A DNA stretch of 63,055 nt, counting the filler, from Octopus bimaculoides (taxonomy: Eukaryota), in NCBI RefSeq assembly GCF_001194135.2. It is 7 parts of 6 records of this genome, joined end to end, with 100 filler letters (N's around TTAATTAATTAA, not from the genome) between each part and the next. Parts side by side here need not be neighbours in the genome. Positions count along the whole stretch, not along the records: positions 35,053 to 43,057 come from NW_026439786.1; 6 more parts are not named here. The stretch is one strand, 5' to 3'. Shown here one piece after another: positions 39,433 to 43,057 of this stretch (positions within the stretch are counted from its first letter, which is position 1; the number at the start of each line of letters is the position of its first letter). A program made the translations under genes and the position numbers. Below the pieces are notes generated by a model. The model was not told the DNA's origin. It saw nothing but the letters and a program-made list of their open reading frames with translations, and ran no database searches.

Positions 39433-40199
39433 GTAAGTTTCGATATATTCCTTTAAGTATTATGCATGTTGTGTATTGTGACTGGGTACATTGTGATTGT
39501 GTGTGTATTTGTATTGCCAGTGTTATATGTTTGTTGTGTTTGTATATTGTGAGAATATTTATTTGTGTTGTTTGTTGTTAGTGTCTGTGATGTTAATATT
39601 TTCTCTTTTATGAGTATGTATCCATTATCAACTAACATTCACACACACATACACAAACACACACACATGCATTTATTCATGAACTTGCATAGATGTGTGC
39701 ATGCATGCTCATTTGCAAGCACCAATATGTGCAAGCTGATACAAATATTAAATACTTTTGCATGCCTATATAGATACTCTTGCCAACTTTCAGAAGCCTT
39801 CTTTTAATACGCATACGTATGCACACCTGTGTGGCATCCCTGCACACACATACAAACTGATGCACAAAATAGGGATTCAAATGTTTTTCATGTATGTGCT
39901 CTCAGTGTACATGCATATGTACATGTAATGCTTGCATGTACATGCACACTTGTATGTTTTTATATTCATTCTTATTTTCAATCATAAGTTGATGAAGAAA
40001 TGCAAGATAATTTATGTAATTTACAATGAAAACTAAACAAAGGCACTATGTAAGTTGCAATAAGAAACAAGGAATGAATTTGAACAAGTTGAGATGTGGT
40101 AAAGTAGATGAAATAAACTGGTGTTAATTTGGAAATAAATGGTGATAGTGAAAAATGATAAATAGTAAAAGAAAATAAATTGGTTGTAGAAAAATTATA

Positions 40200-41115
40200 T
40201 TCATCATCATCATCATCATCGTTTAACGTCCGCTTTCCATGCTAGCATGGGTTGGACGATTTGACTGAGGACTGGTGAAACCGGATGGCAACACCAGGCT
40301 CCAGTCTGATTTGGCAGAGTTTCTACAGCTGGATGCCCTTCCTAACGCCAACCACTCAGAGAGTGTAGTGGGTGCTTTTACGTGTCACCCGCACAAAAAC
40401 GGCCAGGCTCGAAATGGTGTCTTTTATGTGCCACCCGCACAAGCCAGTCCAGGGGCACTGGCAACGATCTCGCTCGAAAATCCTACAGGAGCCAGTCAGG
40501 CGGTACTGGCAACGGCCACGCTCAAAATGGTGCATCTCATGTGCCACCCGCACAAGAACCAGTCCAGGGGCACTGGCANNNNNNNNNNNNNNNNNNNNNN
40601 NNNNNNNNNNNNNNNNNNNNNNNNNNNNNNNNNNNNNNNNNNNNNNNNNNNNNNNNNNNNNNNNNNNNNNNNNNNNNNNNNNNNNNNNNNNNNNNNNNNN
40701 NNNNNNNNNNNNNNNNNNNNNNNNNNNNNNNNNNNNNNNNNNNNNNNNNNNNNNNNNNNNNNNNNNNNNNNNNNNNNNNNNNNNNNNNNNNNNNNNNNNN
40801 NNNNNNNNNNNNNNNNNNNNNNGGGTCTTCTCACGCACAGCACATTTCCAAAGGTCTCGGTCAGTAGTCATCGCCTCGGTGAGGCCCAATGTACGAAGGT
40901 CTTGCCTCACCACCTCAGCCCAGGTCTTCCTGGGCCTACCTCTTCCACGGGTTCCCTCAACTGTTAGGGTGTGGCACTTTTTCACGCAGCTATCCTCATC
41001 CATTCTCACCACATGTCCATACCAGCGCAATCATCTCTCTTGCACGCCACAACTGATGCTTCTAATGTTCAGCTTTTCTCTCAAGATACTTACACTCTGA
41101 CGGGTATTCACATTG
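40200..41115 (-). mobile_element. RTE LINE 3' portion (RT C-terminus, repetitive 3' UTR, (GAT)n tail), spanning a gap
   Basis: RWYGHVVRMDEDSCVKKC...GRGRPRKTWAEVVRQDLRTLGL...DRDLWK. Confidence 0.9.
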
Positions 41116-42246
41116 ACATATATTGTAGTACAAAAAAAAAAAATTAATAATCACTTGGATTATTGGATGTTACTTGTTACTTGGATGAATGTGGGAAGTA
41201 GTTGTAAGTGGTAGGTTTAGTTGGTGGATAAAGATGGAGGAATGATTAATGATACATGAGTTTGGAAGTTGGTATGAGGGTGTAGATAATGATTGATAGT
41301 ACAGAAGAGAAGGAAGAGCAGCATAATGGCAATATTACAGCAGACAAAAGGAAAATCTGAGAAAGAGATGACATGCGGGTGTATAGGTTGCATAAGAGGT
41401 AAAGGCAGGCAGAGTGCATGGCAAAAAAAGAAATATAAGGTGTCACACAGTGAGACTGAACCCAGACAATGTGGTTTGGTCACGATTTCCATTCAAGGGA
41501 TAGAATTTCCCAGGTTTGATATTATACTTGTGTTTAGGAGGACAGGTAGTCGACAGTAATTATCTGTAGTATCTGACAGGGGTGTGATGAGAGGTTTGGC
41601 TCTAGTATCTGACTCATTTATGGGGGTTGTGGTAGTATCAGAGTCAGCGGCAGTGGGAAATACCCTTGACTGCCCACTGGAAGACTCAATCTTAGCTTCT
41701 ATTTCTATGAGACTCAAAGTACTATACCTTGAAGTTTGGGGCTTAATTTTCTCTCATTTGCAAACAGAGTTCGTGGTGGTGGTTGTGGTGGGGAGTAGTG
41801 TTATGTGCTATTTAGCTTGTACTTATTAAATGCAACTACAACAAGTTTCCAAATTCAGGGTCACAGAATAATATGATTTAATGGTTTTCTATCAAAGATT
41901 ATGTAATATCTATGTTGAAGGGAGAAGTTTCTCTCTGATAGGTTATTAAAGGTCCTTGTAATAGGATCTTTTGTGTTATAAGCAAAGGGACAGTTACACC
42001 AACATATTTGATGCTTCCTAGATTTGCTGGTGTTTTTATTCCTATGACATCCTACTCCCCTAGGGTTTAATATGTTGTTGGACGCTCAGCATTCTGGGGG
42101 TCACCACTACCTCCTTGTTTACCTTTTTGTATCATTTGATCTTAGATTATAGTTTCTATTGCCTGTATGGGTTGCTAATTATTTCCAGACTTATGAGATT
42201 TAGAAGATGTATCAAATGTAGTTAGTCCTTGGGAGGTTGTCTTACA

Positions 42247-43057
42247 GATGCACATATATGCATACATATAGACATACATATACATATGTGTATATATGTG
42301 TATATACATATATGTACATATTTATGATAGGTACACATACATAGATTCATACACATTTGTACACATGTGTATACATACATTTACATGCATACTGACACTT
42401 TCATATGCTTTTCCACATACCAAAATCCATATATGTATATATATGTATTCATTCTTATCACTCATCCATTCATTAGAACTGATTACATGATTATATTTTC
42501 ATTTCCTAATATTTTTTTTTTCTTTTTGCAGATGGAGAGCAACGCCCTCCTTCATCTGGTATGAATTTATTTTAGTATTATCATCCCTTTACCATGTTCT
42601 CTTTGTTATTTTGTTGCAAGTCTGCCCTAATCAAATAGATTTATGGTTAAAAGTACTCCATTCATGACAATCCTGTTGTATGTTTAAAGACACAATTTAT
42701 GTAGGAATCAAATTTATGCATTCATAGATTCATACACATATCTCGTCATCATCATCATCATCATCATTTGACGTCCACTTTCCATGCTGGCATGGGTTGG
42801 ATGGTTTGACTGAGGACTGATAAACCAGGAGGCTGCACCAGGTTCCAATCTGATCTGGCAAGGTTTTTACATTCCACCAGCATGGGAACCAGTCAGGCAG
42901 TACCGGCATCGACCATGCTCATATGGTGCTTTTTATGTGTCAGCACCACAGGAGCCAGTCCAGTGACACTGGCATCGACAACACTCGAATGATGCTTTTC
43001 ATGTGCCAGTCAAGTTGTACTGGTATACTTTTATACACACACACACACACACACACA
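42247..43057 (+). repeat. Duplicate of 35053-35921 (exon A unit)
   Basis: Colinear from ACATATATGCATACATATAGAC to CTGGTATACTTTTATACACAC; both ends run into or near scaffold spacers. Confidence 0.95.
42532..42558 (+). CDS. Micro-exon A2, 27 nt, phase 1-1, peptide (x)GEQRPPSS
   Basis: TTTTTGCAG|ATGGAGAGCAACGCCCTCCTTCATCTG|GTATGA; flanks nearly identical to A1. Confidence 0.75.

Follow-up and report, generated by a model that had tools for sequence, protein, structure and literature searches.

Exon 2 of SmPoMuc in Schistosoma mansoni is carried by genomic repeats of about 1 kb, each of which contains a single 27-bp exon (PMC2576457). The repeats are separated by imperfect dinucleotide microsatellites and their introns are more than 94% identical. 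The copies of exon 2 in one gene belong to a few types (r1, r2 and r3), which are reiterated up to 20 times. The authors of that study attributed this pattern to conversion restricted to the introns, with the differences between the exons being kept by selection. They also found that the repeats break short-read and trace assemblies (PMC2576457).

Two other systems share parts of this design. The coding sequence of the schistosome micro-exon genes (MEGs) consists mostly of symmetric exons of 6-81 bp, the lengths of which are largely multiples of three, separated by long introns (PMC4350168; PMC10526429). This design permits cassette splicing, and the genes also have a high dN/dS, are enriched in SINEs and are hard to annotate (PMC4350168; PMC10526429). 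The flagelliform silk gene (Flag) of Nephila is built of iterated exon-intron pairs, whose introns are nearly identical and more homogeneous than the exons (cited in PMC3563967 and PMC2576457), and the authors of the SmPoMuc study pointed to this likeness themselves.

The locus described here lies at positions 35053-43057, from record NW_026439786.1, of the window, which is the whole 63,055-nt stretch of Octopus bimaculoides DNA, filler included. The explanation that we prefer, with about even confidence, is a micro-exon array in which the intron modules evolve in concert whereas distinct exon cores are kept. It is based on one 8-kb piece with two gaps.

Repeat anatomy and splice signals

The piece is eukaryotic DNA with an A+T content of about 63%. 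It is soft-masked throughout and rich in repeats, with abundant microsatellites and three SINE-like copies. The source scaffold is apparently of the gapped, short-read type, and its contigs are separated by runs of N. The features of the piece are listed below.

35053-35921, + strand: repeat unit A1, aligning over its full length with 42252-43057; the left edge is the end of the piece
35331-35357, + strand: micro-exon A1, 27 nt, phase 1 xNGKFYPSSx
35545-35890, + strand: SINE-like element in A1, with an orthologous copy in A2 at 42743-43030
35896-35921, no strand: (AC)n microsatellite that ends the A unit, with its counterpart in A2 at 43035-43057
35935-36135, + strand: core of unit B, an older paralogue of the A core, holding exon B
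35993-36016, + strand: micro-exon B, 24 nt, open in phase 1 only (xDPVKKIKx)
36371-36988: first N gap
37137-38400, + strand: repeat unit C1, in the order minisatellite, intron, (TG)n(AG)n, exon C1, intron, (CA)19
38049-38069, + strand: micro-exon C1, 21 nt, phase 1 xTPDDTLx, frame 0 LHPMIPC
38480-39737, + strand: repeat unit C2, which duplicates C1 in tandem (period about 1.39 kb)
39415-39432, + strand: micro-exon C2, 18 nt, phase 1 xKTKVLx, frame 0 LKPRSC
37934-37992, 38287-38324, 39328-39365 and 39640-39667: microsatellites bordering the C exons
40198-40578: third, independent SINE copy, beside the LINE tail and truncated at the second gap
40579-40822: second N gap
40823-41030, - strand: 3' ORF fragment (tail, ...GRPRKTW... 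type) of a LINE
42252-43057, + strand: repeat unit A2, 7.2 kb downstream of A1; the right edge is the end of the piece
42532-42558, + strand: micro-exon A2, 27 nt, phase 1 xGEQRPPSSx

Unit A1 begins with a TA/CA-rich simple repeat, which is followed by an intron, exon A1, a second intron, the SINE-like element and (AC)13. The C units open with a 20-nt minisatellite (consensus about TGGATCACATTCTTCAGGTG) at 37142-37292 and 38488-38683. The copy number is 7.4 in one unit and 9.6 in the other, a difference that points to unequal exchange between the C units. With a predicted protein of Octopus vulgaris, the ORF of the LINE tail shares 81% identity, which marks the source as an octopod. No tRNA genes were found in the piece and no Rfam family reaches its gathering score. 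Matches to mir-297, mir-3149 and mir-466, located at the starts of both A units (35053-35127 and 42243-42326) and far under the gathering scores, are almost certainly low-complexity artefacts of the TA/CA simple repeats. Pfam searches found no match for the ORFs of the unique region 41110-42246, for those of the repeats, or for any larger ORF in the 8-kb piece.

Five segments emerged as the only clean short candidates from a scan for acceptors and donors on both strands. Each has a pyrimidine tract and AG on its upstream side and GT on its downstream side. Exon A1 is bordered by a T-rich tract with GCAG and by GTATGA, and exon C1 by TTTTTTAG and GTAAGT. The acceptor TTTTTTAG and the 15-nt donor region GTAAGTTTCGATATA are identical in C1 and C2. 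Overall, the bases of the splice sites are invariant across copies, whereas the interiors are scrambled. Each of the five lengths (27, 24, 21, 18 and 27 nt) is divisible by three, for which the chance probability is about 0.012 if four of the lengths are independent. The indel that distinguishes C1 from C2 is 3 nt long, itself a multiple of three. Phase 1 is the only phase free of stop codons in all five, although this is weak evidence, having a probability of about 0.17 by chance per phase. Folding of the exons with their flanks gave energies like those of shuffled sequence (z from -0.95 to +1.8), and structured RNA or exon-intron pairing was therefore rejected as the cause of the conserved flanks.

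The five segments are probably coding micro-exons of an unannotated gene on the + strand, judging from their sequence. The initial annotation took the A exon to be translated. The splice signals, the lengths, the common open phase and the scarcity of synonymous changes speak for this part of its reading, although the frame itself is not proven. The spliced phase-1 peptide was searched against a database of 5.8 billion protein sequences, in which no protein shared three 5-residue words with it and no homology to the schistosome MEG and SmPoMuc families appeared. The likeness to these families is thus one of architecture only. A protein search for paralogous units with the intron-spanning ORF as query returned none, and the ORFs of the window were not on record in an exact look-up in public assemblies.

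Further splice-like signals are present in the B and C units. Strong alternative donors are situated 61-65 nt downstream of exon B, at 36078 (GTGAGT) and 36082 (GTAAGT). They are missing at the homologous site of the A unit and would yield exons of 85 or 89 nt, neither of which is a multiple of three. A possible 12-nt micro-exon, ACAGATACAGGG, occurs at 37594-37605 and at 38988-38999, preceded by TATTTCAG and followed by a consensus GTGAGT donor. The two C units carry identical versions of it, which have no stop codon in any phase, and its acceptor is weaker. The invariance of this candidate is uninformative because the neighboring intron is also nearly identical.

Divergence of exons and introns

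The A1 and A2 exons had been reported to differ at nine of 27 positions, all within positions 3-16. An ungapped recount gave an identical result, placing the differences at positions 3, 4, 5, 7, 9, 12, 13, 15 and 16. The counts for the flanks were also reproduced: two of the 110 positions upstream (-10 and -9) and three of the 102 downstream are not the same in both copies. Over this span, a Fisher test of exon versus intron yields p = 1.1e-6; with all 462 aligned non-SINE intron columns (20 differences) the value is 5.7e-6. A scan permutation, which corrects for the post hoc choice of the patch, did not attain nine differences in 14 columns in any of 200,000 permutations. Together, the Fisher test and the scan permutation show that the excess in the exon is not due to chance.

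The variable patch differs in composition between the two copies. Its G+C content is 71% in A2 (42534-42547) and 29% in A1 (35333-35346), in a region of about 30%, and seven of the nine differences are A or T in A1 and G or C in A2. The GC-rich patch of A2 fits either selection of Gly, Glu, Gln, Arg and Pro codons or GC-biased conversion. An exact inverted 15-nt copy of the A1 core (35335-35349), TGGGAAATTCTATCC, is found at 41498-41512 on the - strand, about 1 kb upstream of A2. It is embedded in otherwise unique, G-rich sequence and covers seven of the nine variable positions. The probability of such a match by chance is roughly 1e-3, and the homology stops at the edges of the 15-mer. The other four micro-exons (B, C1, C2 and A2) have no match of 10 nt or longer elsewhere. 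The inverted 15-mer could be a coincidence, a site of long-range pairing in the pre-mRNA, or a template of patch mutation.

The C pair repeats the pattern with unrelated flanks. About 98% of the 780 nt upstream of the C exons and 91-97% of the downstream flank are identical. The exons differ by seven substitutions in 18 positions and by the 3-nt indel, compared to 29 differences in 1025 positions of the flanks (p = 7.7e-7). Their residual similarity is at the level of shuffled sequence (12 of 18 matches, P = 0.17). The donor region is conserved at every base, but past it the diverged island continues for about 55 nt of the downstream intron. The first 100 nt of this intron contain nine differences, and the exon is nevertheless more diverged (p = 0.003).

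Units A and B are a more distant pair. An upstream block of 22 nt is identical at all positions and the downstream 113 nt are 71% identical. The flanks overall are 71-78% identical, while the exons are unalignable and resemble each other no more than shuffled sequences do. Thus, exon divergence is far above intron divergence in three comparisons, being 33-39% versus 2-4% in the A and C pairs. A metagenome scan with the 22-nt block of A1, A2 and B gave zero matches. A looser, gapped version of the 22-nt pattern occurred at 15 loci, but these had no real similarity according to blastn and were dismissed as chance matches.

The non-coding part of the A unit is a mosaic. The SINE that A1 and A2 have in common is 9% diverged in its 5' part. 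In its interior (35666-35830 versus 42864-42965) 31 of 109 positions differ (28%) and A2 has a 56-nt deletion, whereas the tail, consisting of the last 88 nt before (AC)n (35831-35918 versus 42970-43057), has a single difference (1%). Interior and tail are distinct at p = 2.5e-8 in this comparison of two copies. Decay of CpG does not account for the diverged interior, because only two of 24 differences are in a CpG context. The switch from 28% to 1%, together with the non-CpG nature of the differences, points to recombination or conversion breakpoints within the A unit. The introns close to the exons have therefore probably been homogenized, and their identity may understate the age of the copies. 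The exon A as a whole (33%) is indistinguishable from the SINE interior (p = 0.64), although its 14-nt core, with nine differences, exceeds it (p = 0.013), and some acceleration of the exon is possible. An intron identity that understates the age corresponds to conversion limited to the introns, which the initial annotation had mentioned as an alternative.

The remaining evidence on selection depends on the reading frame. In phase 1, the nine changes in the A pair fall on codon positions 1, 2 and 3 in the ratio 4/4/1, and five consecutive codons are altered (NGKFY to GEQRP) with PSS retained, exactly as had been proposed. The values of pN and pS are 0.48 and 0.06 for the A pair (NGKFYPSS versus GEQRPPSS), and 0.43 and 0 for the C pair. 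A total synonymous count this close to zero arose in 0.7% of trials with random placement of substitutions (P ~0.007), or at P of about 0.02-0.05 after correction for the choice of frame. The same 4/4/1 periodicity can be reread in frame 0, in which case the depleted class is the second codon position. In frame 0 the A pair (IMGNSILHL versus MESNALLHL) has pN 0.31, pS 0.42 and a pN/pS ratio of 0.7; the C pair (LHPMIPC versus LKPRSC) has a ratio of 0.4, with three synonymous changes at the conserved Leu, Pro and Cys. This pattern is neutral to conservative. Frame 0 is excluded only if exon B belongs to the same coding sequence, because B contains two frame-0 stop codons. Phase 1 is likely to be the translated frame on the grounds of the sequence, and the codon-position case for positive selection depends on it. 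The A and C pairs supply 16 substitutions in total. The exon excess is real, but positive selection, as originally proposed, is only partly supported and is not established, because the non-coding divergence is mosaic, the frame is ambiguous and the substitutions are few.

Origin of the pattern

The favored explanation can be outlined as follows. The piece would be part of one large, unannotated octopus gene transcribed from the + strand, the coding sequence of which would here consist of successive symmetric micro-exons, 18-27 nt in length and in all likelihood of phase 1-1. Each micro-exon would be situated within an intronic module of about 0.9-1.4 kb bounded by microsatellites. The modules may have spread by tandem duplication. 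A and B would be the product of an old duplication, the copies C1 and C2 are adjacent, and a 7.2-kb higher-order repeat would include A1 and A2. Gene conversion or unequal crossing-over, for which the microsatellites may be the starting points, would have homogenized the intron parts. The short cores of the exons would escape because conversions that overwrite them are selected against, and each module would thus retain its own peptide cassette. Since every exon is a multiple of three, the cassettes could be skipped or included without a frameshift. The product of such alternative splicing could be a variable, probably disordered, secreted protein rich in Pro, Ser and Lys.

The observations that support this explanation include the excess of exon over flank divergence in three comparisons, the five clean splice candidates with their common open phase, and the sharp switch within the SINE. 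In addition, the exon divergence is similar to that of the unconverted SINE patch, the C island spills over into the intron, the modules are bounded by microsatellites, and SmPoMuc offers a published precedent. It could be objected that the SINE interior was overwritten from another SINE copy, in which case it would be silent on the age of the unit. A more ambitious version, which we regard as doubtful, is that of an octopus micro-exon gene convergent with the MEGs and SmPoMuc. Its homogenized introns would serve as scaffolds for recombination, by which a stock of hypervariable cassettes of 6-9 residues is both shuffled and preserved. Combinatorial splicing would give a secreted protein of high variability, which might occur in saliva, mucus or the suckers. 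In its extreme form, hinted at by the inverted 15-nt copy of the A1 core, a templated patch mechanism would rewrite the exon cores.

The initial annotation preferred strong diversifying selection, according to which the units are recent duplicates with a true divergence of about 2-5% and the translated cores evolve 7-20 times faster than the neutral rate, in the manner of toxin, immune or gamete-recognition genes. Both Fisher tests of exon versus intron (5.7e-6 for A and 7.7e-7 for C) favor this account, as do the phase-1 substitution pattern (P ~0.007), the excess of the A core over the most diverged non-coding patch and of the C exon over the neighboring intron patch, and the unusually high dN/dS of schistosome micro-exon genes (PMC4350168). 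It requires, however, that the intron be a uniform clock, which the mosaic divergence contradicts, and the C exons need at least seven substitutions and an indel where 0.4 substitutions are expected. The signal also vanishes in frame 0, comes from 16 substitutions and weakens on frame correction, and we regard this account as doubtful. It nevertheless overlaps with the concerted-evolution model. If converted tracts are to end only a few bases from either edge of the exon, and to do so in two families, selection is required in any case. Unless homogenization of the exon is selected against, it is difficult to see how two unrelated families would both have spared an island of 14-21 nt with converted sequence on either side. 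Conversion and selection for diverse exons thus complement rather than exclude each other.

The other accounts have less in their favor. If the segments were variable cores of a repeat, or exons of a non-coding transcript, the AG and GT would be fortuitous or non-functional. The lack of a match to database proteins or gene calls, the weakness of a single open phase in five segments, and the soft-masked, repeat-rich nature of the piece agree with this, but three unrelated flank families each place a variable patch between a pyrimidine tract with AG and a GTAAGT or GTATGA donor. The lengths, including that of the C1/C2 indel, remain multiples of three, the splice-site bases are perfectly kept around scrambled interiors, and neither significant RNA structure nor an Rfam family above its gathering score was detected, making a non-coding origin unlikely. 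If the clustered differences arose in a single complex mutation or a small number of them, for instance by replacement with a templated patch or by short-tract ectopic conversion from another module or sequence, and not as many independent substitutions, the comparison of rates would be invalid altogether. Nine changes within 14 nt and no indel, the A/T to G/C direction of seven of them, and the inverted copy spanning seven of the variable positions can all be read in this way. This origin is quite improbable, however, as the homology of the 15-mer ends abruptly, the two sites are 6 kb apart, B, C1, C2 and A2 have no comparable match, and the 15-mer may be a chance result of many looks at the data. 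Moreover, the C pair and the A/B pair would be left unexplained.

An assembly artefact, in which a single locus would be represented twice, by its alleles or through mis-scaffolding, as A1 and A2, is suggested by the two N gaps and by the fact that A1 and A2 reside on different contigs of the gapped scaffold. In addition, 148 nt are duplicated at 100% identity across the first gap (36016-36163 and 36989-37136). These copies begin with the last base of exon B, at the boundary between exon and intron, and the sequences beyond them are unlike. The duplicate may represent another module of the B type or, alternatively, an artefact of scaffolding or haplotypes, and it is also expected from homogenized introns with variable exons, which create branch points in the assembly graph. 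Against an artefact, C1 and C2 exhibit the same pattern inside a single uninterrupted contig (37137-40578), and A2 is preceded by unique sequence. The difference between A1 and A2 amounts to about 4% plus several indels, one of 56 nt, which is far beyond the usual allelic divergence. We consider an artefact very improbable.

Comparison with known systems

The octopus piece has the features of iterated modules, namely tandem repeats with one short exon and its flanks, microsatellite borders, and exons less identical than introns. It also has the feature that defines micro-exons, that is very small, symmetric exons whose lengths are multiples of three. A literature search found no paper linking octopus and micro-exon genes. 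The resemblance to SmPoMuc includes modules of about 1 kb, a 27-nt exon in the A units, microsatellites and nearly identical introns. Unlike SmPoMuc, every octopus exon seen is distinct, and the exons range in length from 18 to 27 nt. The 7.2-kb higher-order repeat alternates between modules of at least three types, the animal belongs to another phylum, and the two systems have no sequence homology.

The symmetric candidate micro-exons and the SINE in the unit are reminiscent of the MEGs. The MEG introns, however, are not described as tandem homogenized modules. Furthermore, the MEG families belong to the platyhelminths and include an exon for the signal peptide as well as a 3' exon, whereas the octopus piece excludes the ends of the gene and no homology was detected. 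As in Flag (Hayashi and Lewis 2000, cited in PMC3563967 and PMC2576457), the octopus introns are more homogeneous than the exons. The Flag exons, unlike those of the octopus, are long, Gly-rich repetitive modules, the divergence of which is partly ascribed to slippage.

More distant parallels exist in several other gene families. Conotoxins and viperid PLA2 combine conserved introns with hypervariable mature-peptide exons, and in both the exons evolve faster than the introns between paralogues, which is the kind of precedent to which the initial annotation appealed. Venom and toxin genes are separate gene copies with exons of normal size, whereas the octopus modules are apparently within one gene and have a mosaic intron clock. 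The small exons of vertebrate tropoelastin all split codons in phase 1, which permits in-frame skipping, and neural microexons have unusually conserved flanking intron sequence. Unlike the octopus array, neither of these is known to have hypervariable cores or tandem homogenized intron modules.

The comparison carries a general caution. Where introns evolve in concert, greater divergence of exons than of introns between paralogous modules is not enough to demonstrate positive selection. Loci of this kind also disrupt assemblies from short reads, and one contig of the octopus scaffold starts exactly at an exon/intron boundary. If expressed, the array would flag a class of genes that standard annotation has missed. 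On the best reading, the locus would be a cephalopod example of the known architecture of the SmPoMuc and Flag type. Provided that it is expressed, it would extend to cephalopods an architecture documented mainly in parasitic flatworms and spider silk, in which the variability of a protein is derived from tiny in-frame cassettes set in recombining, homogenized introns.
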